Shown piece by piece: positions 10,890 to 61,232 of a DNA stretch of 64,000 nt (positions are counted from its first letter, which is position 1; every line of letters begins with the position of its first letter). A program made the position numbers and the translations under genes. The notes beneath the pieces were generated by a model. The model saw nothing but the letters and a program-made list of their open reading frames with translations, was not told the origin of the DNA and searched no databases. Source of the DNA: Hyaloraphidium curvatum SAG 235-1 (taxonomy: Eukaryota; Fungi; Monoblepharomycota); NCBI GenBank assembly GCA_025558095.1, contig JAIVFI010000002.1:496001-560000 (forward strand), in the 5' to 3' direction.

Positions 10890-11933
10890 ATGCCAGTCGT
10901 GCTGTCCAGCAAACGAGCGGCGCTTATCATTCTGATCGGCAGCTTTCTTGCTCTTTGTACGGTTCTCCTCTTCTCGTGGCATTCGGCTTCCCCATCCGGG
11001 AAGTATGGAGGACCTAAGCGGAGGGTTCGCGTTTACACACGGTCTGGACGTAGGGGGTTCTGCACGGTCTCTTTTGCTGGCTCCAAGGCAGCCACGCATC
11101 CGCGCGAACCATACGTGCTTACATTGATGCCCACTATACCGCGGTCGGGGAACCACCTTATGCGTCTCCTTGTTGAAGATCTAACCGGAAGAGCAACGGA
11201 GTCTATCTACGACAACGAAGGTGGCCAGCGGAATAACTTGACACGTACAGGTGGCTTTGAGCCCAGCAGATGTGGAGGCCTTCGCGGCAACTGTACGCAC
11301 GTCCGTGGAGTTGCGAGCGCATGGTCGCTCCTCAAAACGCATCATCCTTTCATGGAGCCAAACATCCCCGTCCGAAAGGATTGTCCTTTCGGTATCCTTA
11401 TGACGGTTCGCCACCCCTTGGACAACTATCTTGCGTGGATGCACTACAGGCAGAACCAAGATGAAGATAGATGGGGTTCCGATCTCAACGTGACGGGCCG
11501 GCCACCCTTGCGAGTCCACCCTTATGCAAGGAGGCTCGTCACAGAGAAGATATTAACGTTTGACTACTTTGCTGATATGTGGGAGAAGCACATAGTGTTT
11601 TGGCACTCCTTGGCAACCAAGCAGTTATTCCCGATCCTTCAGTTTAGATACGAAGATCTGTGCACCAATCCCGAAGCAATCTCTTTCATGTTGGTTGCAT
11701 TCGTAGAAAAAGCGACAATACCGGAAAGCTTCGGGCACCTGAAGATACCCCACAAACGACAATGTGTTATGAGCAACATAGCAGACGCGCATCTGGCAGG
11801 ATTGTCGTACACTGCCTTGATCACTGCGCGAGAAGTCGATGATGTGCTTGCTAAGCACACGAGGCTGCTGCACATGTTTGATTATCCTGACACATGGGAA
11901 GGCGCACATGCTTGGCTCGCAGAAATGGATTAG
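10890..11933 (+). CDS. Type II membrane sulfotransferase (WSCD-like), intronless
   Basis: Signal anchor AALIILIGSFLALCTVLLFSW; 5'-PSB-like TIPRSGNHLMRLLVEDLTG; KTHHP; 3'-PB-like VRHPLDNY; QFRYEDL. The longer ORF start at 10827 lies inside the transposon end. Confidence 0.85.
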   Translation: MPVVLSSKRAALIILIGSFLALCTVLLFSWHSASPSGKYGGPKRRVRVYTRSGRRGFCTVSFAGSKAATHPREPYVLTLMPTIPRSGNHLMRLLVEDLTGRATESIYDNEGGQRNNLTRTGGFEPSRCGGLRGNCTHVRGVASAWSLLKTHHPFMEPNIPVRKDCPFGILMTVRHPLDNYLAWMHYRQNQDEDRWGSDLNVTGRPPLRVHPYARRLVTEKILTFDYFADMWEKHIVFWHSLATKQLFPILQFRYEDLCTNPEAISFMLVAFVEKATIPESFGHLKIPHKRQCVMSNIADAHLAGLSYTALITAREVDDVLAKHTRLLHMFDYPDTWEGAHAWLAEMD

Positions 11934-12344
11934 GCATGGGTGGTGATCTCCGTCTAAGGAACCATGTGAGATGCTCCGTCCTTTCGACCTTTGAACAAAG
12001 ATGCTGTAGATGGGAGAAACCTATGGACTCCACGCCCCTCCCCCACCCCCCCCCCCACCCCCCGGGCCAAACCCCATGACCCGGGGTAAGTCCTGCCGGG
12101 ATCTCCTCCGCATAAGGCTGACCCACCATGTCGAACTTGGGACATGAGCCCCGGGTCGGTCCTGCCGACGATCGCGGTTCTGCGACCTGAGCTTGCTGGT
12201 AGACCAATCCTCCTCGCGAGAAACCAGTGTTCTCCATTGATAGTGTCAACGTTATCGAAATTCGGAGGATCTGCATGCCTCCGCTCACGACCTGGATTGA
12301 GATACCGGAGGTAAAGTCCATTGGCACCTTTGAGTTGGGAGCTG

Positions 12345-13369
12345 ATGGATGCCATGGAACTGGGGATGGAACAGCTGCTCGACGAGACTGAGCGCGCCGC
12401 AGAGGCCGAACAGACGGGCGCAGCGGGGCAGGCCCAACAGGGCGGAACAGCCGACGAGCAGCGCAAGAGTGACGAGAAACGCGCGCTGCGGGAGCAGCGC
12501 AACGCCTTCATCGCCGACAAGGTCAAGGAGGCGGTCGAGAGCCTCAGGGCGGAGCTTGCCGTCGGCCGCAAGGAGCACTACAATCCGATCCTGATCAGAT
12601 CTCTATCACAGGCGCTGACGAGCGCCCCCCAACCCCGATACATCACGTTACCCATTTACATTAAGTTCGGGGAAGAGGGGAGGGGTTAAATGTCACCGAG
12701 CTGCCGGGTACAGGCCTCCTGGAACCTGTTCATAAGCTGTTGGCAGCCCAGCAGGCGCCCTCGCTGAACAACGGCGCTCAGACGGCCGGTCTGGCGGGCC
12801 ATGGGACCATCGACATCACAGTCTTCGCCGTCGAATTTGGTTCGCGGGGGAAGATCTCCCGAAACCAAACACGGAGCTGCTCATCCGCCGCCATACGGCC
12901 GAAGGTCGAGACAGCAAACCAAATGACTGTTTCTGAGGTCCTAGCCCTTCGGAAGGTCTAACCAACCTCGTTTGCTGCTTTTGCACGGTTCGTTTGTGGG
13001 ATTTGCGGACTCGATCATTGCCCTGGAAGACGGTGTCGTTCCTTGTGCGTCAGCACCCGTACGGTCAGGGTCTGTGGTTCGTGCGGACTCTCCGGGCCGA
13101 AAGCGGGCCTTCTACTCACGTCCTTGACGTGCCCGGGCAACCAGACCAACGCTCGTTGCCAGGGTTCGGCACTGCTGCGTCATCACTGGTCCTCTTTGTC
13201 GAGATCGGCCGAACGGGACCGCAGCCGCCGACAGGCCTGGTTGCTTGCGCAATCCAAACTCTACTATGACATTCGCTTCGGCCGATTGCATGACGTCGAA
13301 GGTACACGCTCACGTTTGCTTGATGTGCTGGCTTCAGACATGGGCCGTATCTTCGGCGCCTCGAAATAG
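12345..13369 (+). pseudogene. Degenerate coding remnants (coiled-coil segment, possible WD40-like fragments)
   Basis: Charged helical ORF MDAMELGMEQLLDE..., then out-of-frame pieces LAGHGT...FAVEF and VRLWDLRT. No continuous frame. Confidence 0.25.
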
Positions 13370-13548: not shown

Positions 13549-14139
13549 ATGTTGCCTCTCCGCTCCCTTGTCCGCTCGCCTTCGCTGCTCCGACCGCGCA
13601 GCTCGCGTGGCTTCCTTCCGGACTTTCTCCCGAAGTTTCCCGGAGCTGGACCAGTGCATCGGTTCCGGGACTCCAAGGTCTTGGGCTACAGCTCCGACCA
13701 GCTGTTCGATCTGGTCCGCAACGTGGACGAATACCGACATTTCCTCCCGCTGACGCGTTCCTCACGCGTAATCTCACCGGCAAGACCGTGTCACGCGGCC
13801 GGAGGGGAAGTTCTGCTCGCGGAACTCGCCATAGGGTTCTCCGGATTCGAGGAGTCGTACGTCAGCAGGGTTCGATGCTGGAGGCCGCGACGTGTCGAGG
13901 CGGAAGCTGCAGATACCTCTCTTTTCCGGACCATGAAGACGATATGGACGTTCGAGCCCGCGACCGCCGACGGTGTCCCCCTTCCGCGGACCCGGGTCTC
14001 GTTCGAGATCACCTTCGCCTTCAACAACCCCTTACATGCGGCTGCCGCGAGCCTGGTGTTTGGCGGGGTCAGCAAGGACGTCGTGACGGCTTTCGAAAGG
14101 AGGTGCCTAGAGCTGTACGGGGCGCCCGCTGCGATGTAG
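13549..14139 (+). CDS. COQ10: Coenzyme Q-binding START-domain protein
   Basis: Arg/Ser-rich mitochondrial presequence MLPLRSLVRS..., LGYSSDQLFDLVRNVDEYRHFLP, AELAIGFSGFEESYVSRV, VTAFERRCLELYG. Confidence 0.88.
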   Translation: MLPLRSLVRSPSLLRPRSSRGFLPDFLPKFPGAGPVHRFRDSKVLGYSSDQLFDLVRNVDEYRHFLPLTRSSRVISPARPCHAAGGEVLLAELAIGFSGFEESYVSRVRCWRPRRVEAEAADTSLFRTMKTIWTFEPATADGVPLPRTRVSFEITFAFNNPLHAAAASLVFGGVSKDVVTAFERRCLELYGAPAAM

Positions 14140-14838: not shown

Positions 14839-16000
14839 TTATGGCATCCAATCCAAGAATAGATTGATAAAGTTTGGGCTAATGATCATCAACGTCATCT
14901 TGAGTGACATTTGATCCATCATCAATGGGGTGCTCATGCATGGCCTGTATGTGTCGAGCAGGTGGGTCAAAGCCTGTGGCTGCAACAACCCCTCAAAATG
15001 AACTTTGCTTAGCTGCGTTCCGTTGGCGTACTGCATCAAAAACGACGAGTCACTCTCTTCTTGAATAAACTTGGGGAACAGGGCGCAAAGCTCAGGAACC
15101 GGGGACACAATCTTATAGAAGAAGATTAGCGGTACTGGATTTGAAATCATAGAAACCCAGGCTGCAGAAGAGAGACTCGTCATACGCGTTGAATGCTTTG
15201 TCATCAATGCAAATGTCACCGTACGGCTTGCCAAAGTGAATTTCGTCATACTCGATGCCCAGCTGCCGCAAGCTCTCCAACGTTGCGAGCCCCACATTCT
15301 TCACAGCTCTGCCAACGTTGTGACGCGATGTAACCATGTTGCGTGCTGTGCAAATGATGATTTCATGACCCTCGGTTACGGACACAAAACTGGGCAATAC
15401 GTTCCACACGGCTAACGGTGCTGTAATCTTTGTAATCATTCGGCCACGTTACCAGCGTGTTGTCTAAATCAAAGACAATTCGCAGCTTATAGTGCTTGAG
15501 CTTAGGCGAGTTGAGGCCGATGTCTTTATCTTATCTGTGCAAAACGCCCGGCAGGTAATGGCACTTTACAGGCAACCCTCAAGCAATCATGCGGCTAAAT
15601 ACATGCGAAAGGAAAGATTCACCTGTGTCATCCTTGATGACTTGCTTGCAAAAGTCGCGGCACACGTTCAGGTTGGCAAATTCGTAGCCCCCAACGCAAA
15701 CGTAATCGGAAAATGGCGACGCTCTTCAATGTCGGTCACGCGGTCCTTGTCATCGAAGTTGATAAAGGAGTAGTGAGATAGACCAGTTGGATTACTGCTG
15801 TAGAGCAAAAAGTTTCCCGGCGGCAGAGCTCCCAAATCCAGCCCCTCGTACACGTTGTCACTGTCAAGCACAAGTAGTTGATCATCGCCGTACAATGCCT
15901 CGGGTGTGAGCGCCTGGCATCCATATCGTTGCCGTTGGCACACAGGAAAGCGATAGGAGTGAAAGAACACACAGAGGGATGAGACAAGCTGCCTTGCCTT
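14839..16000 (-). pseudogene. Fragmented nucleotidyltransferase + HAD capsule-biosynthesis phosphatase (EcbF/BcbF-like) + kinase-like gene
   Basis: LLVLDSDNVY...YSFI...VTDIEE; LRIVFDLDNTLV (HAD motif I, about 15452-15488); GHEIIICTARNM...HNVGRAVKNVG...YDEIHFGKPYGDICIDDKA; then YKIV...LFPKFI. Several frameshifts, stops and deletions. Confidence 0.8.
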
Positions 16001-18580
16001 CCGATCTATCTGATCTGGCTGGCTCTTTTAAGCTAATTGTCTTTTTCCAGCTCGTCATCGTCATCCTCCCTCGGGTAAGATCCCTGAAGAAGAGTGGCTG
16101 CTTGTTCTTTGTCCTACATCACCGTCTCTGGTCAAGAAAACATGGAGCAAAGCCTCATCCTTTCTACTTACTACATCTGATGCCGTGCCTCTCTCCAAAT
16201 CACCCGTAACAGGAGCCGATGTCTCCGAGGCAGGATAGCGCATGTAAATGTACGTCGCAACAAACACGTTGCACACGCCTATAGCATTTGTGTAAGAAAT
16301 CGGAGCCGAAAAAAGAGCAGCTGACAAGAGGAGGAGAATGGCCGTCGAAAAGGTGGTGGCGACGCTCTTGACAATGGCATCGGCATACTTATAGACAGCG
16401 GTAATCACGATACCCATCAGAGAGTTGAGAACAACGACAAGAATGGCAAGGAAACTGTATCCCTCGAAAAAACCAGGCTCCGGATTCTCATTTCCGGCCA
16501 GCGCGATCGACTTTATCAGGAAAGCTACATTTGTTGAACAGAAAGCCAGTGAAATATAGCAGAATATTGATAGCGTGCAAGGACAATGCTGCTGTCTTCG
16601 TCACATGATCTGTAGGCTCCATTTGCCGCCGTCATGGTGACCTGGACCAGCAGGATGATGTAGCCCACCAGTGGTGCCGCCACCGTCTGCTTGCACTCAT
16701 TGTACTGAGATTGCACGAGCCCAAGCATTTGAATCGCCATGGCAATCCATTGCAATTGCGAAATTGGTCTCGATAGTATGAAGAAGAGGATGAACGCCGT
16801 CAAGAAAGTGGACCCAGACTTGACGAGCTGAATTGTACCCGGCGATGCCAGCAGAAAGGCATAAAAAGCAAGATGGTTATTAACCGCGTACGAGAAAGAC
16901 AGAAGACTTATGTTCCGCAGCAGTGTCGGTGACACAGAGGTTCTGAAATCGTTCACGATTGTCCAAAGCTCATTTAGGAAACTTGCCGGGCTCCGAACAC
17001 TCTCGCACTTCCTGTCCAAGGACGACACATACAGTACGGCAGAAAGCCCAAGTTTAAAGAGTTCGGACATTGCCAGAGCTGAAGCCTGAGAGAACTCATA
17101 GCGACCCCCTCTTTGCGAGAGCTTGTAAACCAGTGCAACCGAAACTTGTATTGCCACAAGCGACGCAAACACAAGCAACTTGGGGCCCAAGGCCGTCGCT
17201 CGCGAGGCCATGTCTGTAGCTTGTAGCTTAGCCTGGGGCTGGGCAGTAAGGCACTTATTGAGTGGAATCAAAACTTTCGCAAACTTTCATTCGCGCCCGA
17301 AGCGCGCCGGGTTCCGGGGGCGAAGCCCCCAGGCCGGGGTTAGGGGGCTGCCGCCCCTTAAAGCTTGGGAGAAGGAGGATTTGGGCCCCGTTTGGCCGTG
17401 GAGGATGTGGGACCCGCGATCGCCGCCGGGACAACGGAGGCTTGGTCGAGCCATGTCACAGTATAGAGTGTCCAGAAACTACAAGTGCAATCAAGAACTG
17501 TCCCTCTTGTTGCGCTTCGGTTTAGGCCGAATCACAGCCATCCCCTGCTCCTGGTTGGGCGGTAGTCAACGCTGTTGCAGGATCTGCAACAGCAATGAAA
17601 GACGTCAGGCGATTCTGGTGTGCTGCGGGGCAGATGGCTGCTCGCGAGATGTCTTCTGATTGTGGTCGACAGTCCTGGCGGACGAACGCCTCCCGCCGGA
17701 GTTCATCGCCGAATTGACCGAACGCTCCTGCGGGAGAGCACCTCCCGCGGAGAATCCATAGCCGAATTGATCGAAGGGTCCTGCGGGCGAGCGCCTCCCG
17801 CGGAGCTTCGTTAGTACAAGCATGCTGGACGGTCGCAATCGTCTCACCTCCAGGGTCGTCGACAACGTAAGTCCGACGGTACTCATCCAAGCTCCGGAGC
17901 ACCTCGTACCTCATCATTGCTGTTCCGATTCGGAACCCCTGTCAAAGATGGCTAGGACCTTGCGCACCATCTCATACGGGCTCTGCGCGGGCGCCTGGTG
18001 CAACACTACGGCCCACCTCGTCGCAACGCCAAGGGGCCGCGCGATGAGCTGAACCGCTGCCATGGCAATGTTCAAGTGGCCGTCGACAAGCCGGCAGCCT
18101 TCTTCTTGCCCGCCGCAGAAGACATCCTTCAACTTGCTGCGTTCACGGCTCGTCGGAAGGAAGGCTACGAAGGGGCGAAGCTCCGAGAGCGTGCTGAAGC
18201 GAATCCGAGGCTGATCCGAGCCACAACACCTCAGCGGTCGCACAAAGTGTCGGGAAAGTCGATCGAGTCCAAAAGGCCCCGGCTCGGCGCCGGCAGGTGA
18301 AGAGATTCGGGGCTCCGCGCGAGTCGGGGACGCGGGACGCTGCGGCCGACACGAAGTCTCCCGAGCGTCAAGCGGGTCCGGCCGACCCCGTGGCAGTTTG
18401 CTCAGATGTTTCTCCGGCAGATTGGCGTTCCCAGAGCGGCCGCAGAGAGGTCGGGGGGAGCGGGTGCAATTCTGTTCTGGAAGCCGCTTAGAGCCGTTGC
18501 GACCTTCTCGGGTCGGGAAGGCGGCGGGTAAAACCGCGCAGAGAGTCACATGCGGGGGTTCGTTTTTCGAACCTCCATCA
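15875..18580. repeat. Segmental duplication copy 1; copy 2 is 32784-34010 plus 46579-48058
   Basis: Near-identical direct copies starting TAGTTGATCATCGCCG. Looser similarity continues to about 18650/48127 and again at 18738-18838/48522-48608. Confidence 0.95.
16033..17211 (-). pseudogene. SLC35A-type nucleotide-sugar transporter, copy 1 (frameshifted)
   Basis: Multi-TM protein with SELFKL, YAVNNHL, VYKYADAIVK. One intron 16114-16171 gives ...EDDDELEKDN*. Versus copy 2 it has a 2-bp deletion near 16610 and one extra T near 16530. Confidence 0.85.
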
Positions 18581-18874
18581 CAGGTGCGGGGCCGCGTCGG
18601 AGCACGCCCCCGGCCTTCTGGTGGTAGGCAGCTGCGGAGCAGCTTTCGGACAGATTTCCCACCCACCCGCCTCAGTTGTACGGATATGCTAGCGGGTCGG
18701 GATCATGTACTTCGGTTCCATAATATATGGAGCCCACGGGCGGGGCTCCGGAGACCGCTTAGGCGGCCCGGGGCCTCGTTCCACGGCAAGCCATGGATAT
18801 CGGACATCGGACACCGCGGTGATCGGGGGCAAGGTTTTGACCTAATTAACGCGGCCAGCTTTAGCCTGACTGCC
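18082..18874. repeat. Dispersed repeat family, with a third inverted copy at 53598-54070
   Basis: 18082-18475 matches the reverse complement of about 53670-54070. CCTAATTAAC..CAGCTTTAGCCTGA(C/T)TGCC at 18841-18874 matches inverted 53598-53627. Confidence 0.8.
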
Positions 18875-19009: not shown

Positions 19010-21932
19010 ATGAAAGTGCCATGCCGAGTGTTCGGAAGGGCGAGGACGTCTATACTGAACTATGCCATCTGCCTCGGACTCGGCCTATTCTTGCTCAGGC
19101 CTTGGGTTAGCCACGTGGCTCCTGTCCGAAGCTTTTCTCCTGCCCTGGAGTCGTTGTCCCGAGGGGACCGTTTTGTGCTTGTATTCCCAGTTGTTGCAAA
19201 GGACATAGCAAAGGTAATCTCCGACTGCATTTGCGTATGTATGATACCGGATCACTGAGACAAGGAAGATGGAGACTATCCTTGACACCTATGGCGCCGT
19301 CGGCCAGCCTTGCAGCGGCAGGTTTACGGCGGTCACGGACTTCTATTTCCTCTACAATCTGATTCAAGACGGCACAGTCGATGCCCTCAACCGAAAACTG
19401 GCGCAGTCTTCTTCTTTTCGCAAAATGTCGCGATGCTTCCATGAGACGGGCGTCGTGTTTGCGAACCTCTCTGGTTTGTTTTCTAGCCAGGTCCTATGCC
19501 TGACAATTGACACCCCCCCCCCCAGGGATTGAAGACGAATATCCCGCAGGGTGGGTATGGCGGGAACTTTTCTGGGCCCCGACTCACTCTCTATTGTTTG
19601 GAGGCCTTCCAACATGTTTTTCAAGCTCATAGAATCACCGGATCTCAAGTGGTTTCGAAGTAGGTATAAACTTGCGTTTTGGGCGGAGTCGGACGTTGGT
19701 GAGTACATCTGGCCGCAGTTATGATTCAGTCGTTTGACAGCTGGCTTTAGAACCTATTCGGCCCATGTGGGCAGACGCGCTCTACATTGAGGCAACGTTA
19801 CCGACTTCCTACAACGGCCTCGAACCGGACTATTGGATGAAAGGAAGCGTATACAGAGGTCGTGGTTTTGACCAAGCAGTTCTTTATCGGGAAAACTGGA
19901 ACTGGTAATGCACAAGTTTCTCTGGAGTGTGAGCTTCCCTAACCGTGGCTGCAGGGTCGACCACCTGAATGGTAACGCGTTTTATCGCTTGAATGATCCT
20001 GAGTTTGAAGACTTCGTGAGAATCACAAAGGTAATTTGCTGCGTTTAGTCAGGTCGTTGAGTCTCACCGTGCTGCCTAAGGAGTACGAACCACCAAATGA
20101 TTATTGGAAGCCTTTTGACATTGCGATGATGTAGGTTTGCTCCTTCTATGTCGAGCTGCCACTGATTGCAAGAATTCAACTAGGCGCGTTTTGAACTCCA
20201 ATCCTTATGGATGGGTGATTCGGTGAGATGCTTGCCATCATCGCGAATACTGATGGCTGACTTGTAGTTTCAGCCAATATGCTGCCCGGAAGTGAGCCTT
20301 CACGTTGCACACTATTCCTTTGCTACTTACATTGGCGACAGGTTCGTCTCGACTGATTTCATCCAGCATTTTGGTTGGTATTGTCGCGGGTATGTGATAA
20401 CGTGGCTCACTCCTTGCGGAAAAGGCTTTTCGAGTGACGCAGCAACGGCAGCCGCTCTTTCTAATCGGCGGACTAGCTTTATCCATGGCAAACCGGGTTC
20501 GGCGGGCGACGTAGCCTACAAAGCGAAGTACAATGCGCTGGGCCAACCGCGTCTTCGGAACGTCTCGGAGGCCGAGAAATTAGGAGCAATTCGTCCCGAG
20601 CATAAGCTCTGTGTGCTGTTGCGGACTTTCAAGGTTGATTTGCCGTGGGTGTCCTCCGGAATCCAATTTGGTTGTCATTAATGGTTCCTGTTGTGTCTAG
20701 CTATGCTAAGCTAGCAGCCAAATCAGCACTCAAGCACATATGGCACCTCAACGAACTTGTGGTCGTGGTTGTGCAGAAGGATCTCGATTTGGCACAGAAG
20801 GCCTTTGAAGGGAAGGATTTCCTTCAGGTGCGGGTTGTGGCGGAGCAAGAAGTATTGCAAAACGGTCATATGCAGCAAAAGTAAGCTTGCCAGAGACGTG
20901 ACGTTTCAGCAATTGAGTTAACTCTGTGTTTTCCAGGTATACGAAGGTGATGCAAGATGAATCTGGCGGTGTGCACCTTTGATTGACGTCATCAGAAGCT
21001 CAACGCCGATATCTACTGCCCGAAGGACACTCGCTACGTATTCCATCTGGATTCGGACGTGGTTCTTACTCGTCCGCTGCTGGTGCGAGATGTGTTTTTC
21101 CGCGGCCGACCCATGGTGCAATACGCCCCGTACGAGTCGATGCCGTCTGGCGACCGGCAGTGGCAGGCTGGCACCTCGAGCGCCGTGAAACAGAGTGTTA
21201 CTTTGGAATTTTCCAGGTAGAGTGCCCTGATCACGTCACATACATTCGACTGTTGATTTCTTTCCTGCAGGACGAATGCGCATGGTAAAGCACCTCGTTG
21301 CCTTCCCTCGTACGTTGCTAATGAACTACAGTCTACCCAATCGAGGCGTACTCTCGCGTTAGGGCTTTCTTGGAGAAGGCGCACGGTGTCAGTTTGATCG
21401 ACTTTCTACGAACGAGACGAGGGCGCCTTATGGAAGACGCCTTCGAAGCGGGTAACTTTAGCCAGTCGACTGTGACCACGGATAACCTTTTCAGTGACTT
21501 CAACACAATTGTAGGTCTTGTCAAAGAAGTGATACACTAACATCTGAGACGGTCTGACAGGGTGCATATCTCTACCATTATGAACGTCACCTCGTCTCTT
21601 TTGTTCCTTTCTACGTGAACAACCCGACGATAATCACAAGTTTTGCCGATGTGTTTCCAGTGACGCCGTGGCTTGTGTGCCAAGGGAATGCGAGATTGAA
21701 CCTAGACTACAGCATGGTTGCATATGGACTTTCCCTCCTGGATAGGGAACTGGCGGCGCTGAAACGTGCCATGGGTTGGTGCTTAGCGTCCATTTCAAGG
21801 AATCTCTTTAATTTTTGTCGCCTAGATGGAGGATGGGAGGCTGGTTGTTGGGAGGTTATTGCTCTGTTCCAGGAGCTGCAGAAGAGAGCAATCACGGCTC
21901 AGGAACGCTTTCAAAGAGAGAAGCCCAAATGA
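19010..21932 (+). CDS. Type II membrane protein with two glycosyltransferase-like domains, intron-rich
   Basis: TM YAICLGLGLFLL. Domain 1: DEYPAGPSNMFFKL...FWAESDVEPIR...YWMKGSVYRG...HLNGNAFYRLND...PFDIA. Domain 2: VLLRTFKVDL...GHMQQK...ADIYC...VFHLDSDVVLTRP...QWQAGT...FSDFNTIG (DxD; DUF6492-like by recall). The exons I checked splice in frame. Confidence 0.75.
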
Positions 21933-22047: not shown

Positions 22048-23320
22048 TCCCAGAGGTCCTAGAATTCGATCGCCCGCCCGTTGCCGGAGCGGAACCCGAC
22101 GAGTCCGTCGACCAGGTGGAGTGTGCGCGCACGCAGGTTCAGGATCTTCTGAAACGGCGAAATTCGCACCCTCTTGTTGCGGTAGATCTGGCCCTTCGAC
22201 AGGTGGTACTGTGCGACAGCCAGAACATCAGAGTCCAAGTAGGTATCAGCCAAAACGCCGGGCGCTTTGATTCTGTCGATGGAGTTCTTCCTGTCGACTT
22301 CGAGCACCTTGAGCAGCTTCTCCAGCTCCTTCACGGCATAGCAATCCCGGAGCTTGACGTGCACCTCGGGTTAACTGGCCTGCGGAAAGTAGTTCTGGTC
22401 CGTAGGGGGTACTATTCGAGCGAACTGATTGTTCCGACAGCGGTGTCCGCCAAGCTGGTCGGAAAGATGGAGCTCCTGCTCTTCCCGCGCCTGCTCTTCG
22501 CGGCGTTCCCGCTCCTCTTCGTTCTCCTCCATCTCCTCCCGCGATCGCTTCTTGCCGCTCGTCTTCTTCGGCCTCCGTGACAGGTACTCCACGAAGAGGG
22601 CCACGGCGTCTCCCCAAATCGGCCATGCCGGGAGCTTCTCCGTCTTGCAAAACTGCAGGTATGCTGTCATCTGCGGCCGGTAAAGAGAGGTCGAGGTCGT
22701 CGTCTGGTCCTGCCGCGCCTATCGAGCTGTTCGAGGGCCCGGCACGAGATTTCCGACGGGATGGGTACGGCGTTCTGAATCTGCAAGCGAAGCCCGCCTA
22801 GAACGAGCTGCAGGCCGGCAGAGGGGAGAACAGTCTCGGCGTCGTCCCCAGGAGCGTCTCCGGCCGAGGTAGCGGGCGCGCTGGGATCGCTGGGGGAGGT
22901 GGAAGGTGCAGCTGTCGAGGGCGAACCGGGGAGGGCTGTCCGGCCACAGGCAGAGCTGTTCCGCCCGCGGTCTTATTTTTTTTCGGCGTTAGAGCCTCCG
23001 AAGCCCTTCCGGACGGGGCCGCAGGGGAGCCTTTTTAGGTGGCAGGACAGGTCAGCGTGGTGTTCCTCGCGGCGGGCTTCCGGCACAAACTTACCGCCGC
23101 CTTCCCCCGTATGCTGGTCCCTCCCTTAGTCTTGGTCTCCCGTCGCGCAGGCAGGGTCGGCGTGGGCAGCTCCAACGGCGTCTCGATCTCCTCCTTCAAC
23201 TCCGTGTTGAGTTGCACGTATTCAATCTTCGAGATCGACGCATTTCGGGCCCACACCACCTCCCTCTTCCCTTTCCCCTTTCTCTTGGGCGGTCCTGGGG
23301 CATCCGCCGGCAGCTCTTAC
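22048..23320 (-). pseudogene. 5' part of a Crypton-like (Ndc10-type) tyrosine recombinase gene, truncated just after the box I Arg
   Basis: AYLQFCKTEKLPAWPIWGDAVALFVEY, KLRDCYAVKELEK...DTY...VAQYHL and LRARTLHL...FRSGNGR align with the Crypton protein at 62131 (HKLWCRGNGVEPFPV..., VRNRALHL...DRSSDVR). Confidence 0.75.
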
Positions 23321-24231
23321 AACACGAGCTAGAGCGCGAACGCGCAGACAAGAGGGGCTGACGCGTCCCGTGATGGAGGATTCCATGGAGAAGCTGTCTT
23401 TGCCTCTGAGTCTGGACACTGAGGAAGAGCAGTCTTTGCCGCTGAGTCCTTCAGCGAAACTCCTGCGGGCCTCTCCGAAGGCTCGCTCACCTTCGCCCTC
23501 GGGGTCAGAGTGCCCGGTCTTTTCGCCTACGGAAGATCCTACGCATGAGGAATGGCAATCTGGTGGCCAGAGGAGTCGCTCATTTTTGCCGTTGGGAAAC
23601 CTGGAGAACCCTGCAGAGTGCCAGAAGTTCCACTGGAAGGTGGATCGCATGTTCGACGGCACCGATACGCCCAAGGAGCTCCACTATTTCGAATCTCCTT
23701 GGGCCTCGCCTTCCTCTCGATCCCCAACGTTGACTCCCGAGATGCGGGATGGCCTTCCGCTGAGCTGGGTGACGTACTCCCCGGTAACACCGGTCTCCAG
23801 AGAGGTTCGTTCCTCCGCGGTTTCAAGCGCCGGCAAGACAGAACCCTGGAAAGAACCGGAGGAGGTCGATGCCAGATGCTAGAGAGCTGTACGATTGGAT
23901 TGCTCAAATTCAGGACCAATGAGGTGAACTTGACCCGATCGCGGCGAGTTCTGGGTGAAGTCCAGCGAGGTTTTCTGCCCCGGATTGGAGCCGGATTGGG
24001 TCGGATTGTAGAGTGCCTCCTCGCATCCGTGCCGGATTGAGGATTGGATTTTTCCAAAAACATGCAAGACTGAGGATTGGCCAGTCACGTGAGGGTCCTC
24101 GACCGGGAGCTTCCTCACTTAACTTGTTCGGGCTAAAACGACCCCACCAAACTACACAACGTGATCGGGCTAAAACGACCCCACCAAACTGTGTTAGTTT
24201 GCGCGTGTGGTGAGTTGCCAGGAGCGGGTTA

Positions 24232-24771
24232 TTGCCGTTTCTCCAAAGCTTGCCCACCCGGCCCCACCCCGCACACAAAACTGGGCGCCGAATCTCCCAT
24301 CCCCCAGGCCACGGCAAAAGCAGGAACCAATAGGAAATACCCGGAAATGTTTCATATTTGATGCGCTCTATGTATCTGTTCCGTTGTCTGCTTGCAAAAC
24401 TGCCGAGGGCGGGAGGCCCAAAGCACCGTGCTGGGCTCAACCCGCGGTTCTCGGATTACAGCGCCTCACTGGTCCGCGTACATATCCCAAAACAATGTGC
24501 AGACTGCATTCGCCGTACCCAGGCCTGCTGAGCAGCGCCTTGAGCAGTCTTCCTGGCCGTCGCTGAGGGGCACCCGGTCAACGAGACCCAGCAGCAAACC
24601 ACTGTGTTTCGTCCCACACACCCCACGGCGGCAGAAAGAAAGCGGCAAATATGAAACTTTCGCGCCGGTTAGCTGGTTCTCGCTCCAACGGTTACGGGGT
24701 GAGTGCGGTTGCAGTTAGGCAAGCGTTTCGTTCGCGGAAATTGGGGTGGGCAAGCTTTGCCCAAACGGCCA
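24232..24771. mobile_element. Tc1/IS630-type MITE (internal deletion derivative) with TA TSD
   Basis: TIRs TTGCCGTTTCTCCAAAGCTTGCCCACCC and TGGCCGTTTGGGCAAAGCTTGCCCACCC (reverse complement). TA on both sides. Empty site visible in the paralogous TIR near 54640-54690. Interior resembles exon 1 of the PHD gene at 29536. Confidence 0.88.
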
Positions 24772-24817
24772 TAATGTTTTGCGAGTGCCCACACTTGCAA
24801 ACTCGCTAGACTAAGCG

Positions 24818-26464: not shown

Positions 26465-27063
26465 GGGTATCCAGCGGTTAACAAACTACCAGTTCCCGAC
26501 GTTCGCCCTAAGTGGCGCGAGTTTCTTATGGCGCCGACTCAAAGGTTGAGCTGAGTAGCGACATGGTTCAGGAGCATGGTGCACTCGACCTCGGGGGCGG
26601 CATTCTTATGCTGAAGTACATATAAACAGTACCCAGGAGATGCCGTTCTGGACTGTGGAGCAAACATAGGGTCGCACGGGTTACTCTTTGCCGCTGCCGG
26701 TTACGAAACACATGCGTGCGAGCCGTCCTAATTCCCCATACCAACACATCCGCCCGATCGGCCGCCGCTGCCTTCGCTGTCGCTCGCTTCTGCAGTAAAC
26801 GCTTCAGGACAACGTCCTTGCTCCCGGGTGATGCTCCTTGCCCGAGGCTCCGCGATACCGTTCGCCGGGAGCTCTCAGGGCAGAATGGCATAGGGACAAC
26901 TCTAGCCCTTCGCTCCACCGGAGGAGGTTCGCCGCCTGCACGGGCCACTCGTCCTCGTGTACTTGCGGGCTCTTGCCCAAAGAAGCCGGCGCTGGCGTTT
27001 CTCTAGTAAGAGGTCGGTCCATTGATGGGTTGACGAAGGGTCTGGTCCTAATTCATGGCGTCC

Positions 27064-29325: not shown

Positions 29326-29535
29326 GGCGTTCCCCCCAGAGCTAATTGGAGTTAGCGTCGTGGTTTTGGTTTTCGCAGTTAGTGGTGCAGGGAAGCGCAC
29401 CGAAAATGTTCTAAACGGAGTTTAGGGTCGGGCTCTATTGCATTTTTCTCCAAAGCTTGCCCACCCCGCGCGCGCGCGCAATCAGGCACCAAACGTCCTC
29501 GAATCTGTCCCCCCCCCAGCCCACGGAGGAAGGCA

Positions 29536-31970: not shown

Positions 31971-32013
31971 ACGAATTCAACATCTGTTATTTGCAAGTAA
32001 TCGCAACGTTACA

Positions 32014-34714: not shown

Positions 34715-34738
34715 GACGCACATGCTGTTGCACACGAC

Positions 34739-43400: not shown

Positions 43401-43472
43401 GTCAACGCTCCGGCCCCCGCGCCGGTCGCTTTTGGTTTGAATGTAGATGAGGAGCTGATTCTTGGGGCGTAG
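37499..43472 (+). CDS. RT + restriction-like endonuclease ORF2, split by the LTR insertion
   Basis: GLRPIGI, GVDGGAEA, VDSRNAFN, QGDPLS, GYLDDL, GLKVVGAPVG; CRRGC..GEHAFSGC..GHD; GDVL..LEIK..KDY..FDSY. Removing 40462-42574 restores one continuous frame. Confidence 0.92.
40462..42569 (-). mobile_element. Gag-only non-autonomous Ty3/Gypsy-type LTR retrotransposon
   Basis: Identical 230-bp LTRs (40462-40691, 42340-42569; TGTCAGG...CCTGACA), GGTCT 5-bp TSD, PPT GAAGGAGGGAGATGA. No pol sequence. Confidence 0.95.
41289..42287 (-). CDS. gag: Gag protein (Ty3/PEG10-like capsid with CCHC knuckle)
   Basis: PEKFDGNR, IASHLSGAALSWF, LRQTSSASAYTSQF, PVPMDI, CFYCGKEGHRQAEC. Intact 332 aa. Confidence 0.93.
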   Translation of the reverse strand: MDLPTDIPGLVQALAAKFTTQDAQFSELLGSVNALRQELQELRRFAPPPGQPTRTRQSEQLPPSPPEAALPRIKVAAPEKFDGNRSKLRDFMTQIKINFHANPGMYSTDGQRIAFIASHLSGAALSWFSAVEDDADITTNYAKFISELETNFGETDEAGKAQAKLRELRQTSSASAYTSQFRLLAAKTGYDDAALMAQYRMGLKDAVKDLMIRDKPATLSELIKIAIDVDDELHRRRLEKQGYWPAHGIPPRSTTTFPASASTTTNATATSAGTAVTDGPVPMDIASLRHGPLSDEERARRRINGLCFYCGKEGHRQAECNDRSARPPPPAK

Positions 43473-43569
43473 GGGGATTCCATGGTGGGATTGCTAGCTC
43501 CTCATTACAAAGCGAAGCCGTAGCCCACGCCCGCCGGGGAGAGCCTAGCAATAAGCAAAGTACATAGGC

Positions 43570-46420: not shown

Positions 46421-48189
46421 TGGATTGATGTCCTTCGTTGTCGCTAACCACTGTATCCGTTTCACTCGCAAGTCGCTGCAAGTTGTAATTATAAAACCTT
46501 ATATAAAGTCGATTCTTTGCTATTCGAGCCAAACGGTTTGGCGCGCGCTTCCGGTCCTTGCTTTATTACACAACACAAGCGACCCCCTCTTTGCGAGAGC
46601 TTGTAAACCAGTGCAACCGAAACTTGTATTGCCACAAGCGACGCAAACGCAAGCAACTTGGGGCCCAAGGCCGTCGCTCGCGAGGCCATGTCTGTAGCTT
46701 GTAGCTTAGCCTGGGGCTGGGCAGTAAGGCACTTATTAAGTGGAATCAAAACTTTCGCAAACTTTCATTCGCGCCCGAAGCGCGCCGGGTTCCGGGGGCG
46801 AAGCCCCCAGGCCGGGGTTAGGGGGCTGCCGCCCCTTAAAGCTTGGGAGAAGGAGGATTTGGGCCCCGTTTGGCCGTGGAGGATGTGGGACCCGCGATCG
46901 CCGCCGGGACAACGGAGGCTTGGTCGAGCCATGTCACAGTATAGAGTGTCCAGAAACTACAAGTGCAATCAAGAACTGTCCCTCTTGTTGCGCTTCGGTT
47001 TAGGCCGAATCACAGCCATCCCCTGCTCCTGGTTGGGCGGTAGTCAACGCTGTTGCAGGATCTGCAACAGCAATGAAAGACGTCAGGCGATTCTGGTGTG
47101 CTGCGGGGCAGATGGCTGCTCGCGAGATGTCTTCTGATTGTGGTCGACAGTCCTGGCGGACGAACGCCTCCCGCCGGAGTTCATCGCCGAATTGACCGAA
47201 CGCTCCTGCGGGAGAGCACCTCCCGCGGAGAATCCATAGCCGAATTGATCGAAGGGTCCTGCGGGCGAGCGCCTCCCGCGGAGCTTCGTTAGTACAAGCA
47301 TGCTGGACGGTCGCAATCGTCTCACCTCCAGGGTCGTCGACAACGTAAGTCCGACGGTACTCATCCAAGCTCCGGAGCACCTCGTACCTCATCATTGCTG
47401 TTCCGATTCGGAACCCCTGTCAAAGATGGCTAGGACCTTGCGCACCATCTCATACGGGCTCTGCGCGGGCGCCTGGTGCAACACTACGGCCCACCTCGTC
47501 GCAACGCCAAGGGGCCGCGCGATGAGCTGAACCGCTGCCATGGCAATGTTCAAGTGGCCGTCGACAAGCCGGTGGCCTTCTTCTTGCCCGCCGCAGAAGA
47601 CATCCTTCAACTTGCTGCGTTCACGGCTCGTCGGAAGGAAGGCTACGAAGGGGCGAAGCTCCGAGAGCGTGCTGAAGCGAATCCGAGGCTGATCCGAGCC
47701 ACAACACCTCAGCGGTCGCACAAAGTGTCGGGAAAGTCGATCGAGTCCAAAAGGCCCCGGCTCGGCGCCGGCAGGTGAAGAGATTCGGGGCTCCGCGCGA
47801 GTCGGGGACGCGGGACGCTACGGCCGACACGAAGTCTCCCGAGCGTCAAGCGGGTCCGGCCGACCCCGTGGCAGTTTGCTCAGATGTTTCTCCGGCAGAT
47901 TGGCGTTCCCAGAGCGGCCGCAGAGAGGTCGGGGGGAGCGGGTGCAATTCTGTTCTGGAAGCCGCTTAGAGCCGTTGCGACCTTCTCGGGTCGGGAAGGC
48001 GGCGGGTAAAACCGCGCAGAGAGTCACATGCGGGGGTTCGTTTTTCGAACCTCCATCACGGGGCGGGGCCGCGTCGGAGCACGCCCTTGGCCTTCTGGTG
48101 GTACGCAGTTGCGGTGCAGCTTTCGGCCAAAACTCGCCAGATCCCGGGCTCGGGCACCCAGATTCCGATTCCGGAGATTACCTGACATG

Positions 48190-57308: not shown

Positions 57309-58189
57309 GGAAAAACTCCTCAATGACCCCACCGCGGTCTTTTAGGACTTGTCTGACCACCAAATATCTCCGGACATGATGATCAGAATCCTCGAAGGCG
57401 TGGAAAAGCTTGTTGAAGCAGGATCACAGCGGGTCGTGGTCATCGACGTGTCCTCCAATCGTCTGGCGACTATGACCGTTGGTCAGCTCTGTGCCGTTTT
57501 CGACATTCTCAAGGAAAGGAAAGGCATCCGACTTCATCTTGGATTTATTTGATATTTTCTTGCCGAACCTTGATGCCGCCATTGCAAAGTTCGACGAGTG
57601 TGTGCGCCGGCGCGTTTCTGTCGGACCGCCATAGCCGAAGATTGACAGCGGCGCAATGATGGAACGCGTTATCGGGGAAGCTCTCAAAGTCAATGCCACT
57701 TTTACGCGTTTAATAGACAAGAAACAGGATGGTATTTCAAACATGCTCGGTTATATGGACACAGACGCACGCGACCTAGAGCGCAAAATCACGACTGCGG
57801 TCAAAGATTATCTCGTAGACGGCGTCATTATTCAGCACCGCTTTGCCTACATTCATGGTACAAAGAGTCATACCGACATTGATGGCGTGGTAGCGGGGAC
57901 GCACCCTCCACTCAGCGCCCGGTTGTGGTCGCCATCGAGGCAAAACACAAGCTCGACAAAAAGGCAAGGCAAAGGCCGATGCTATTTCCGAACTGGTTGC
58001 TTTTCAAACGCTTTGGGAAGATCTTTGTCTTGAGGATGATGACATGGCGACCGATGGTGCCGAACAGGATCACTCCGCGGAATACAACAACCTGTGCGTT
58101 GCAGAGTTCCGTACCCACGAACTCATTTTTGCATTTGGTTCCAAGAACGTAGTCAACCCTGCGCTGCTTTGCGAAGTTTCCTGGTCTAC

Positions 58190-58850
58190 TGGTCGCGGAG
58201 CCAGACCACCAAGACGCCTTTCACATTGCTCACGAAATCGGAACATGTGCCTTCGAAGATCTGCCGTACACAGGGGCTTCGTTGGTGTAGGCAAAGCTCT
58301 CGTCCATGTAAACCCTTTTATCGTCTGGAATCGCTTCGACTGCGGCGAGATAGTCCCGGATCTCGCCGACTACCCGCTCGTCCGGCCAGTTGAGAGGCTC
58401 ATTTGACACCTTTTTGCGCGTGATGCGACACAGAGCTGTCCGCAATGGGAACCTCCGTCGCAGCAATGACGTCGACGTTTCTGCCAGTCGGCTGCTCAGT
58501 CAGGTGAGCCTTCATTGCCTCAACCTGAGCGTCCGTGAGCTTGCGTGGCCTCCCCCGGAATCGGTTTGCGCGCAAGACTGCGCTCGACGGACCACTGTTT
58601 CATCCAGACGTAAACCAGCGTACGATGCACTTTGAAAAGCGTTGCAGCCCTTGCGACCGACGTTCCGCGCTTGACTGCCTTCACGACGGCGAGCCGGGTA
58701 TAAACAGGGCGACGCTTGTGCTTCAAGACCAGCTGCTGCTGTGACAGGAGCGCCGCCGTAGACGCAGTGGGCATCGGTTCGTCAAGCGTTTTCTCCGTCT
58801 CCTGAGTGGTCATCGCGGTGTTCGCGTGCGCGACGAGGTAGAATTGGAGA
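58190..58850 (-). pseudogene. IS630/Tc1 transposase N-terminal fragment
   Basis: HTH GTSVARAATLFKVHRTLVYVW, GRPRKL-like linker, VYMDESF. Frameshifted and truncated. Confidence 0.8.
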
Positions 58851-58970
58851 GCGATGTTGGATAGGACCAACGCCCCAGTTGTTGCGCGCCTAACCAATTC
58901 GCCTATTCAATCCAAATCCTTGAAGTACTTTACTTGTTTGCATACCGACGGCACTCACAAAAAGCACGCC

Positions 58971-61232
58971 ATGCAAATAGGACTTCGGTCATTGCGCTCG
59001 CTCGCGACTCTGCTCTTGGTGGTCACATTAAGTGTCCTTGTCATCTACTTGTCTAGACGGATCGAAGCTAGGACACCCGGAAGCAAGAACCACGTTGACA
59101 TCCTGGCTGTTGTTGGCACACGGCCAGAAGCCATAAAGCTGGCTCCTGTCATCAAGGAGATACGACGTCGAGATGGCATTTCGATTGCGGTAATCACCAC
59201 TGGACAGCACGCACAAATGCTAAATGGACTTCTAAAAGAGTTGGCTATCCCGGTTGAAACGCATGGGCCACACCTCAGCAACGCGATGCAAGCAGGCCAG
59301 TCTTTGTTGAGCCTTTTCAGTCGCTGTGCTCTTGCAATTGAGCGCGCGATTGAGCACTATCGTCCTCGTGTTGTGCTTGTGCAAGGAGACACGACAACTG
59401 CGCTTGCAGGATCGCACGCTGCCTTTTATGCACGGACGCCACTGGCACATGTTGAAGCCGGGTTGCGGACCTATCGTGTGGGAGCTCCTTTCCCGGAGGA
59501 GTTCAATCGGAAGTCAATCGCCGCCGCGTCATGCTTTAACTTTGCGCCCACGAAGCGGGCGGCGAGTGCGCTTCTTACGGAAGGGGTCCGAGAAGACAGG
59601 ATATGGGTCACGGGCAACACCGTCATTGATTCGGTGCTTGAAATGTCGCGCCAGCCGCAAAATCCAGCTTTCGTGCAGTTCTTTGTTGACCACGGCATAT
59701 CACATTTAGAGAGACAGCGGCGTGCAAACGGGGAGCTAGTTATGTTATTGACGTGCCACAGACGCGAAAACCACGGCGAACTTACGAACATTATTTCCGC
59801 TGTACGCTTGCTACTTGATATGCACCAGCACCTGCATGTCTTGCTCCCTGTGCATCCCAACCCTGCTGTGCATGACGTATTTTTGAAAGAGTTCTATGGT
59901 GTAGATCGGATGCACCTCCTGCCACCTCTTGCCTATGGCGTCACCGTGACCGTGCTTGGGACATACGCAGATATTGTAGTGACGGACTCGGGAGGACTGC
60001 AAGAAGAGTCAACAAGCTTTCATGTGCCTGTCATTGTTCTCAGGGAGGTCACGGAGCGTCCAGAGGGTATCGATTACGGTGTCGCGAAGCTGGTGGGAAC
60101 AAACACGTCCTTGATAGTGCAAGCAGTCACGGCTATACTGTTTAACGAAAACGGCCTACGCGACTCCATGTCCCGGATTACTTGGCCCTATGGGGATGGT
60201 CATGCTGCCGAGAAAATTGCCAATGTGCTAACTTCAGAAATTACCGCAGACCCGTCGTTAGTCACCTGTTTGCAGTCTGGGCCAGGTTCATTACCATTGG
60301 GATGGCGGTACTCAGAAAAACATTTTGGCCGTGTGTGCCGTGTGGACCCTTTCCTTGACGAAGCAACTGTGTTTTTCATGTTGACCAGTCGGGATGTTGG
60401 GCTGACAGCCACTTGGTTCCGAAACTTCGAGCTTCTCATGCCATGCTACAAGCGCATAGTCATACCTGTTGTCCGTAATGAGGTGGACGATGTGCGGCAC
60501 GCGGCACCACCGTACGCCCAAATCGTACCCATGGATGTCCCGGAAGTGGTGCGAGGTGCAGTGGCACCGAATGAATCTGAAGTAGAGCGCGACAGGCGAC
60601 TGGGGCGAGATGACTATTTTCACCAAGTATATGCGAAGTTCACAGCCGACAAGTATCTTCAAGAATCCGACACACTTATTTTGTTTGTTGAGGCTGACGC
60701 TGTGTTCCAGCGCCCCGTGACAGCAGACTGCTTTATGAGAAACGGCAAAGTGATTTTTGCTGGCAACAATGGCACATTGATGTGGAAACATGGCACAGAA
60801 TTTGCCCTTGGTGTCAAAACAGCCTTGCATTACTACATCTCGAGGACCCCAGTGCTACTGCACCGCAGCACTATACTTGGTGCGAGGAAGCATATTGAGA
60901 CGTTGCACAGGATGCCATTTGATGCCATGGTTAAGCACGTTTTCAGACCACAGTTTTCATGGAATCCGAACAACACCATGTTTAGCGAGTTCAACACACT
61001 GGCTGTTTACGGCACAATCTATGAACCACATTTATATGCTGTCGAGTCTTGGACTAACTTCACAGTGCTTCCAAAGCAATGTGGGAGGCACTTTTCTCAA
61101 CCACGGGATAGCAAGTACGGCAAGGTCATCAATCTGATGCAAATGGAGAGATGCACCCAATGCGGTCTTAGCATGCTTTCAGGGGCACCAGACGTGATTC
61201 CGAGACCGAAGGCATGCCATCTGGACCTGTAG
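58971..61232 (+). CDS. WecB-like epimerase-glycosyltransferase fusion, copy 2 (inverted duplicate)
   Basis: Same 753-aa product as 27064-29325. Shared sequence runs from about 58966 to 61572. Confidence 0.92.
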   Translation: MQIGLRSLRSLATLLLVVTLSVLVIYLSRRIEARTPGSKNHVDILAVVGTRPEAIKLAPVIKEIRRRDGISIAVITTGQHAQMLNGLLKELAIPVETHGPHLSNAMQAGQSLLSLFSRCALAIERAIEHYRPRVVLVQGDTTTALAGSHAAFYARTPLAHVEAGLRTYRVGAPFPEEFNRKSIAAASCFNFAPTKRAASALLTEGVREDRIWVTGNTVIDSVLEMSRQPQNPAFVQFFVDHGISHLERQRRANGELVMLLTCHRRENHGELTNIISAVRLLLDMHQHLHVLLPVHPNPAVHDVFLKEFYGVDRMHLLPPLAYGVTVTVLGTYADIVVTDSGGLQEESTSFHVPVIVLREVTERPEGIDYGVAKLVGTNTSLIVQAVTAILFNENGLRDSMSRITWPYGDGHAAEKIANVLTSEITADPSLVTCLQSGPGSLPLGWRYSEKHFGRVCRVDPFLDEATVFFMLTSRDVGLTATWFRNFELLMPCYKRIVIPVVRNEVDDVRHAAPPYAQIVPMDVPEVVRGAVAPNESEVERDRRLGRDDYFHQVYAKFTADKYLQESDTLILFVEADAVFQRPVTADCFMRNGKVIFAGNNGTLMWKHGTEFALGVKTALHYYISRTPVLLHRSTILGARKHIETLHRMPFDAMVKHVFRPQFSWNPNNTMFSEFNTLAVYGTIYEPHLYAVESWTNFTVLPKQCGRHFSQPRDSKYGKVINLMQMERCTQCGLSMLSGAPDVIPRPKACHLDL

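Follow-up and report, generated by a model that had tools for sequence, protein, structure and literature searches.

The window analysed here is a 64,000-nucleotide (nt) stretch of the genome of Hyaloraphidium curvatum (C2:496001-560000, on a contig of 1.3 Mb; genome 32 Mb), and coordinates refer to the whole window unless a contig or locus is named. An epimerase reading frame 99-100% identical to an NCBI protein of this early-diverging fungus bears out the origin of the DNA, and a Ty3-type retroelement together with short GT..AG introns seen in RNA contigs marks it as eukaryotic. It holds a gathering of glycan genes around two copies of a gene in which a UDP-N-acetylglucosamine (UDP-GlcNAc) 2-epimerase domain is fused to a transferase-like domain. 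About 70 open reading frames (ORFs) and stop-free frame segments, among them the six glycan genes, were scanned against Pfam and NCBIfam. The majority of these segments had no family match, a result owed in part to queries that were short exons or lay in a wrong frame, and 20 further ORF segments scanned between 46.6 and 64 kb contained no recognisable family other than those of transposable elements (TEs). Six unrelated glycan families were present among about eight non-TE genes, which confirmed the observation of a first-pass annotation of this DNA that nearly all non-transposon genes except COQ10 concern glycans. A rough binomial estimate of ~2e-9, which assumes that ~2% of genes are glycan genes, places this gathering far beyond chance. 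The type II membrane anchors previously assigned to four of the gene types were recovered on all four, each as a single N-terminal hydrophobic segment with the more positive flank on its N-terminal side. The glycan genes were located as follows.

10827-11933, + strand: sulfotransferase-like gene, intronless, 368 residues, type II anchor, G+C content at third codon positions (GC3) 0.57, single copy in the genome.
14842-16027, - strand: remnant of an NTP-transferase/HAD (EcbF-BcbF-like)/kinase-like gene, pseudogene, single copy.
16006-17211, - strand: nucleotide-sugar transporter copy 1 (SLC35A type), N-terminus intact, frameshifted, with a 58-nt intron at 16113-16170.
19010-21932, + strand: two-domain type II transferase, 17 exons and 16 introns, 696 residues, transcribed and spliced, domain 2 DUF6492/Stealth-like.
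24818-26464, + strand: NXPE-like candidate O-acetyltransferase, 548 residues, with a transmembrane anchor, a beta-sandwich, an alpha/beta domain and a conserved G-x-S (GDS) motif.
27064-29325, - strand: epimerase-Stealth-like fusion copy 1, 753 residues from the Met at 29325, intact, type II anchor.
32970-34011, - strand: nucleotide-sugar transporter copy 2, open frame, its first 37 codons cut off by a long terminal repeat (LTR) insertion at 34011.
46572-48126, - strand: severed 5' part of transporter copy 2, comprising the first 37 codons and the upstream region, a duplicate of 17093-18649.
58854-61232, + strand: epimerase-Stealth-like fusion copy 2, ORF of 792 residues, Met common with copy 1 at 58971, intact, inverted.

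The two fusion copies are 99% identical, with 4 residue differences from the common start Met (5 over 755 aligned residues). Their epimerase domain matched PF02350 (E=9e-88). It scored 352.1 bits against the wecB equivalog TIGR00236 (cut-off 210.15) and 67.9 bits against NeuC_NnaA (cut-off 235.9), by which it is classed as a non-hydrolysing epimerase of the WecB type, and UDP-N-acetylmannosamine (UDP-ManNAc) is its expected product. These scores agree with the use of ManNAc that had been suggested; a role of the window epimerase in sialic-acid supply was rejected on the same comparison. The NCBI gene model at 58854-61232 is 482 residues long and calls an intron after the epimerase domain, with loss of the C-terminal transferase-like domain, so that the fusion is invisible in the current annotation. 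The uninterrupted ORF is backed by two homologues, P0001 (757 residues) and P0003 (687 residues).

The C-terminal 320 residues of the fusion are rare. A word search found P0001 only, and a HMMER search of 1.84 billion representatives with this domain returned 211 proteins at E<=1e-3. DUF6492 was matched by 16 of 35 aligned relatives, Stealth_CR2 by three (best 7e-6) and glycosyltransferase family 2 (GT2) by three. No PDB Stealth chain matched the profile of the domain. Its predicted fold is closest to solved Stealth catalytic domains (PDB 9bgf, 7s6n, 7s05, 7dxi, 8j2n), which suggests, at the level of a structure model, a ManNAc-1-phosphate linkage. The capsule-like logic proposed earlier thereby takes a concrete form, with a fused domain that by structure lies nearest to Stealth sugar-1-phosphate transferases and a parallel in CsaA, CsaB and CsaC. 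Fold neighbours in Atlas were DUF6492 clusters, mostly viral, including giant-virus FkbM+DUF6492 fusions. About six DUF6492-like loci were counted in the 32-Mb genome, three of them in the window. A literature search found no papers on the DUF6492 family. Stand-alone DUF6492 relatives generally lay on contigs that were too short or had an uninformative gene context. One of them, P0134 (contig L022, 10001-10897), lies amid genes densely packed on two strands, nearly all without a family match; this layout is typical of giant viruses, and no hallmark genes were present in the 21 kb examined.

A second protein with a domain of this kind is encoded by the two-domain gene at 19010-21932. Twelve of its GT..AG junctions were read directly from RNA contigs and four more were inferred; the introns are 47-59 nt long (50-56 nt for those seen directly). 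Two micro-exons, 20937-20946 (10 nt) and 21271-21284 (14 nt), are each flanked by a pair of introns and show up in the RNA contigs as gaps of 111 and 113 nt that are interrupted by a few letters. The joined translation was compared with the window's own proteins, and family and profile searches were run by single exon. Domain 2 matched the C-terminus of the epimerase fusion (blastp E=1e-4; profile E=2e-12) and a single exon matched DUF6492 (E=0.014); to judge by these matches, domain 2 is homologous to the fusion C-terminus. The gene had been described as a double glycosyltransferase: it is real and spliced, its domain 2 belongs with DUF6492, and its domain 1 is a putative glycosyltransferase domain.

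The NXPE-like gene adjoins fusion copy 1. G237 and S239 of its product are invariant among six homologues. Atlas placed the protein at 0.94 to fungal hypothetical proteins and at 0.88 to NXPE3-like clusters, a likeness with no alignment behind it. Foldseek returned only generic filamin-like and flavodoxin-like matches for its structure model, and a PDB profile search was empty. A paralogue just outside the window, at L007, joins the same beta-domain to a Lipase_GDSL_2 domain. At C2:600884-601138, 80 kb away, lies a 99-100% identical fragment of the gene's last 84 codons, a sign of recent segmental copying. It is plausible that the NXPE-like enzyme is the O-acetyltransferase of the glycan.

On a metagenome contig (L001), a fusion gene 60% identical to that of the window has a homologue of the NXPE-like gene (E=1e-13) on one side and a TPT/UAA transporter on the other; gene order and orientation differ from those of the window. 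Such an adjacency speaks for the epimerase-transferase, the O-acetyltransferase candidate and the transporter working as one functional unit. When the L001 neighbours were searched for in the H. curvatum genome, a 264-residue gene had no homologue and the TPT transporter only distant matches elsewhere. Scans with two profiles yielded neither viral relatives in IMG/VR nor further metagenome loci. In Spizellomyces, Terramyces and Boothiomyces, epimerase-GT2 fusions adjoin other glycosyltransferases or transporters. Within the H. curvatum genome, two of the three Epimerase_2 genes and three of the ~6 DUF6492-like loci lie within 35 kb. The sulfotransferase-like and two-domain genes are linked to the unit by position only, apart from the domain family that the two-domain gene has in common with the fusion.

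The sulfotransferase-like ORF gave weak matches to PF00685 (E=0.025, 14.4 bits, under the cut-off of 22) and to a PDB sulfotransferase (SULT) (E=0.05). Atlas related the protein to eukaryotic Sulfotransfer_1 clusters (0.97), with a WSCD-like cluster among the best (0.96), and motifs resembling a 3'-phosphoadenosine-5'-phosphosulfate loop, PRSGNH and RHPLDN, were found by eye. In the donor-supply remnant, the fragment 15116-15448 matched TIGR01689 (EcbF-BcbF) over model positions 39-112 of 126 (E=1.2e-8, 34.9 bits); this is under the cut-off of 162, which places it outside the subfamily, and the label HAD, EcbF-BcbF-like, fits it best. Inspection by eye showed a nucleotidyltransferase-like stretch ahead of this fragment, HAD motif I, DLDNT (DxDxT), in another frame, and a further fragment after it. 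The HAD part of the original description is therefore retained; the NTP-transferase and kinase-like parts, read by eye only, found no support in family or other searches. At least three frame changes over three frames, two in-frame stops and the lack of a start codon mark the remnant as a dead gene. Both transporters belong to PF04142 (E=1.9e-28, 100 bits; cut-off 27) and TIGR00803, and neither is intact. Relative to copy 2, copy 1 has lost 2 bp at 16610 and gained 1 bp at 16530, which breaks its frame. The 37 codons lost from copy 2 include the first helix. RNA contigs carry copy-2 variants together with a 5' end that runs into the LTR (loose end at 17101), so that a chimeric transcript exists, and the retrotransposon may now drive transporter copy 2 without its first helix.

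The remaining recognised features inside the window include the following.

6442-7185: Plavaka transposase.
~13560-14136, + strand: COQ10, its START/RatA identity confirmed; no other gene within the gathering is clearly unrelated to glycans.
34011-46578: Ty3-type LTR retrotransposon block of 12.6 kb with RVT_1 and Ty3 capsid/gag domains, splitting transporter copy 2.

The LTR block stands outside the pathway and is evidence of turnover. Self-comparison showed two young duplications: the second copy of 15875-18649, 99.1% identical, is divided between 32784-34011 and 46572-48126, and 26731-29330 has an inverted counterpart at 61565-58966 (98.8% identity). The left boundary of the transporter duplication lies inside the nucleotidyltransferase-like remnant, by which copy 1 represents the ancestral arrangement. 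At 97.2% identity, the LTR pair of the block (34023-34710 and 42829-43509) has diverged further than the duplication into which the block was inserted (99.1%), as would be expected of a composite block or of duplicated segments kept alike by gene conversion. The epimerase duplicates are a mosaic, with 3 differences in the first 2.1 kb (99.9% identity), 9 in a 25-nt patch and 19 in the 333-nt 3' flank (94%), which points to an older duplication homogenised by gene conversion. They begin 5 nt before the ATG and have no common promoter. Retroposition of the fusion was rejected, there being no poly(A) at the 3' boundary. The element at 29438-32783 has four full-length copies in the genome at 98-100% identity, and parts of 22048-24797 occur many times. 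The region is thus as transposon-rich as first described (a Ty3 LTR element, a Plavaka transposase, and repeats whose copies at other sites of the genome are 98-100% identical) and is still turning over, with both transporter copies damaged, the donor-supply gene dead, duplicates 99% identical and young TE insertions.

The glycan genes differ in composition from their surroundings, as had been noticed in comparison with THR1 and COQ10. Their GC3 is 0.41-0.59, against 0.74-0.88 for THR1 (0.81), COQ10 (0.75), TE genes (0.80-0.82), a NeuB cluster described below, and the third epimerase with its neighbour; this baseline consists of the named host, TE and cluster genes. All but one of the 1-kb stretches of the window below 53% GC fall on glycan genes, the exception being 57501-58500, which has no recognised gene. 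With COQ10 at 0.75 between island genes, the low GC is gene-specific and not regional. Three other regions of the contig (L003, L005 and L006; 28 kb) had no low-GC patches, and L004 had one short low-GC stretch. RIP-like (repeat-induced point) mutation was not supported as the cause, the duplicates being 99% identical and dinucleotide indices unremarkable. The low-GC patches tested in the flanks of the window proved to be anchored glycan genes as well.

L012:3-1187, + strand: GT61 gene, low GC, anchored.
L007:2753-3823, - strand: third PF04142 transporter, apparently intact, low GC, anchored.
L007:5007-6985, - strand: beta-sandwich plus GDSL enzyme, low GC, anchored.
L009:166-1365, + strand: FkbM methyltransferase, low GC, anchored.
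L009:4233-6388, + strand: GT77 plus O-FucT-like protein, low GC, anchored.

The island accordingly spans at least C2:486-586 kb. Low-GC patches pair one-to-one with glycan genes in this GC-rich genome and so provide a simple marker for such genes, and the match between the two raises the question of origin, foreign DNA or a special expression class. Two further groups of related genes lie elsewhere on the contig. At C2:340001-350000 (L013), NeuB+SAF (3564-4637, + strand), Glyco_tranf_2_4 (4729-5817, - strand), CTP_transf_3 (5762-6469, + strand) and a PF04142 transporter (6535-7671, - strand) form a compact cluster of host-like GC, in which PseF is the best NCBIfam match of the cytidylyltransferase; this cluster is a nonulosonic-acid (NulO) pathway in a fungus. 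At C2:202001-212000 (L005; 2471-3733 and 7308-8675, both + strand), a gene at 523 bits, above the cut-off, for the WecC equivalog (UDP-ManNAc dehydrogenase) lies 3.5 kb from the third WecB-type epimerase, and the pair is a candidate UDP-ManNAcA pathway with host-like GC3 of 0.86-0.88.

A quick maximum-likelihood tree joined the window epimerase to P0001 and P0003 (Shimodaira-Hasegawa-like approximate likelihood ratio test (SH-aLRT) 97), this group then to a Rhodelphis fusion, next to the clade of chytrid fusions. A branch with SH-aLRT 92 parts 13 rows of eukaryotic fusions from 62 shorter, mostly unnamed rows, the few named ones being bacterial. The third epimerase of the genome nests among these 62 (presumably bacterial) rows. 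A recent bacterial transfer of the fusion's epimerase was not supported by this tree, and the 16 introns of the two-domain gene argue against a recent prokaryotic origin of that gene.

Taken together, these data are tentatively read, with a confidence just short of an even chance, as a Golgi module for a glycan containing ManNAc or ManNAc-1-phosphate, analogous to CsaA/CsaB/CsaC and set in a transposon-invaded island of at least 100 kb that has the window at its centre; the pathway interpretation of the first-pass annotation is in this sense partly supported. An SLC35A-type transporter would carry UDP-GlcNAc into the Golgi lumen, where the membrane-anchored WecB-type domain, whose lumenal topology we infer, would convert it to UDP-ManNAc. 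The fused DUF6492/Stealth-like domain would place ManNAc-1-phosphate (less likely plain ManNAc) onto a putative glycan acceptor, and the related two-domain protein may perform the same transfer. The adjoining NXPE-like serine enzyme would O-acetylate the product. The sulfotransferase may sulfate it, if this enzyme and the transporters indeed serve the same glycan.

Several points weigh against this interpretation. The fused domain scored 19.3 bits against DUF6492 (PF20102; E=6.8e-4), under the gathering score of 22.9, and no Stealth CR1-CR4 model matched it. The Stealth-like fold is no proof of phosphotransferase chemistry, because retaining GT-A glycosyltransferases also match. The NXPE-like protein had no match in Pfam (the NXPE, Neurexophilin and PC-esterase models included), NCBIfam or PDB, and its structure model is poor (predicted local distance difference test, pLDDT, 46); O-acetylation, as first proposed, is favoured by the position of this gene beside the fusion both here and on L001 and disfavoured by the missing curated-family match. 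The sulfotransferase is tied to the module by co-location, with no other link to it. Both transporters of the window and the NTP-transferase/HAD/kinase gene are damaged, and the module may be incomplete or reliant on genes elsewhere, such as the apparently intact L007 transporter. The combination of fusion, NXPE-like homologue and transporter, sought in relatives as the first reading had advised, is kept in just one close-relative contig, and other contexts of the NXPE-like family were uninformative. A literature search found no glycan analysis or biochemistry of H. curvatum.

The main rival, which we consider rather unlikely, is a mixed glyco-island in which independent Golgi glycan-modifying genes gather, duplicate and decay, sharing a compartment and a composition and making no single product. 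It would account for the unrelated activities of the low-GC genes beyond the window (GT61, FkbM, GT77 plus O-FucT-like, transporter, GDSL), for a state in which half of the donor-supply genes are dead and the enzymes intact, and for the restriction of conserved adjacency to the epimerase fusion, the NXPE-like gene and a transporter. It is less at ease with the survival of that adjacency on L001 through rearrangement, with the packing into 35 kb of two of the genome's three epimerase genes together with about half of its DUF6492-like loci, and with an epimerase, phosphotransferase-like and O-acetyltransferase-like set that fits a known chemical logic (PMC7501274). According to another view, the enzymes act on glycans of the sialic-acid type (Kdn/NulO): the acid would come from the NeuB/cytidylyltransferase cluster 150 kb upstream, SLC35A-type transporters would carry its CMP-activated form, the NXPE-like protein would O-acetylate it and a WSCD-like sulfotransferase would sulfate it. 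The upstream cluster (C2:343-348 kb) does contain NeuB+SAF, a glycosyltransferase, CTP_transf_3 and a transporter of PF04142, the family to which the CMP-sialic acid transporter belongs. In animals, NXPE1 O-acetylates sialic acid (PMC12216134), and WSCD1/2, whose cluster lies at Atlas 0.96 to the window sulfotransferase, are sialate sulfotransferases (PMC9304399). We nevertheless regard this view as very unlikely: the window epimerase is scored as non-hydrolysing, is fused to a transferase and so does not feed NeuB; the likenesses to NXPE and WSCD come from a language model, with no alignment behind them, and the Pfam NXPE models gave no match; and the upstream cluster would seem to stand apart, having a host-like GC3 of 0.74-0.83 and a transporter of its own.

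Compatible with any functional reading, and in our view doubtful, is the proposal of a fairly recent horizontal transfer, in which a medium-GC donor, another eukaryote or a giant virus, supplied the low-GC glycan genes, whose codon usage has still to adapt to that of the GC-rich host. The island GC3 of 0.41-0.59 against 0.74-0.88 elsewhere, gene-specific around COQ10, is clearly atypical and would fit the partly horizontal origin of the first reading; the closest relatives, on L001, have a GC3 of 0.57-0.61. DUF6492 fold neighbours are mostly viral and include FkbM+DUF6492 fusions of giant viruses, an FkbM gene lies in the island, and one DUF6492 relative sits on a contig of dense genes nearly all without a family match. 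However, the epimerase domain falls among eukaryotic fusions of chytrids and Rhodelphis (SH-aLRT 92 on a quick tree); the two-domain gene is expressed and split by 16 short spliceosomal introns; two profiles run against IMG/VR recovered no relatives; the best relative is just 60% identical, so that a donor cannot be named; and expression that is low or confined to certain stages may instead be the cause of the low GC3. In the boldest version of the ManNAc module, which is distinctly improbable, a bifunctional anchored enzyme would make UDP-ManNAc in the Golgi lumen and at once transfer ManNAc-1-phosphate, giving a phosphodiester-linked, O-acetylated and possibly sulfated glycan, on a foreign island from a eukaryote or giant virus. 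If true, this would be a re-invention of the meningococcal serogroup A capsule pathway within the secretory pathway, and DUF6492, which is widespread in phages and giant viruses, would gain a first function, that of a sugar-1-phosphate transferase.

ManNAc-phosphate glycans are not known from fungi, and UDP-ManNAc chemistry is regarded as largely prokaryotic. New here are the non-hydrolysing type of the epimerase and the side-by-side arrangement of O-acetyltransferase-like gene, fusion and transporter in an environmental relative. The joining of a bacterial-type epimerase to a domain shaped like sugar-1-phosphate transferases suggests that eukaryotes have a so far undescribed way of making an O-acetylated surface glycan with ManNAc-phosphate. 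As a candidate for a new glycan linkage in eukaryotes, the putatively lumenal fusion is directly open to testing, and it would offer a first functional handle on DUF6492.

Each part of the module was compared with known systems. NXPE1 is a glycan O-acetyltransferase of 547 residues with a transmembrane, beta-domain and esterase architecture (bioRxiv 10.64898/2026.05.20.726592; PMC12216134). The window protein resembles the animal NXPE family in its N-terminal transmembrane helix, beta-rich domain, C-terminal alpha/beta domain of the esterase type and length of ~548 residues, and differs in matching none of the Pfam NXPE, Neurexophilin and PC-esterase models; its structure model is too poor for comparison. 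Relative to the Stealth proteins GNPTAB, a GlcNAc-1-phosphotransferase, and Mycobacterium tuberculosis CpsY, the fused domain has 8-14% sequence identity and no CR1-CR4 match, and the inserted Notch and DMAP domains of GNPTAB are absent; phosphotransferase chemistry for DUF6492 is a proposal drawn from the fold. The chytrid epimerase-GT2 fusions (annotated as hypothetical) and the Rhodelphis epimerase-CHGN/GT7 fusion likewise have an N-terminal WecB-type epimerase and a C-terminal glycosyltransferase, their epimerase domains stand on the window's side of the tree, and they often adjoin other glycan genes. Their partner domains are instead of the GT2 or GT7 type, and their epimerase domains are 38-42% identical to that of the window.

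The fullest parallel is with the csaA-csaB-csaC genes of Neisseria meningitidis serogroup A, whose CsaB is a Stealth protein. In that system CsaA is the epimerase, CsaB the ManNAc-1-phosphate polymerase and CsaC the O-acetyltransferase, and O-acetylation is reported to stabilise anomeric phosphodiesters (PMC7501274). Common to both are a non-hydrolysing UDP-GlcNAc 2-epimerase that supplies, or in H. curvatum would supply, UDP-ManNAc, a transferase of the Stealth structural type, and a serine-dependent O-acetyltransferase (here a candidate) encoded next door. In H. curvatum, however, epimerase and transferase form one type II-anchored polypeptide, presumably lumenal in the Golgi; the transferase is DUF6492-like, with no match to a Stealth sequence model; and the O-acetyltransferase candidate is NXPE/PC-esterase-like and not an alpha/beta-hydrolase. 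General Pfam and NCBIfam scans of the window turned up no export family of the ctrABCD type, no search having been aimed at export families. Where the meningococcal locus has an ATP-binding cassette (ABC) export system, that of H. curvatum has nucleotide-sugar transporters and a sulfotransferase, and a eukaryotic secretory route would make ABC export genes unnecessary.

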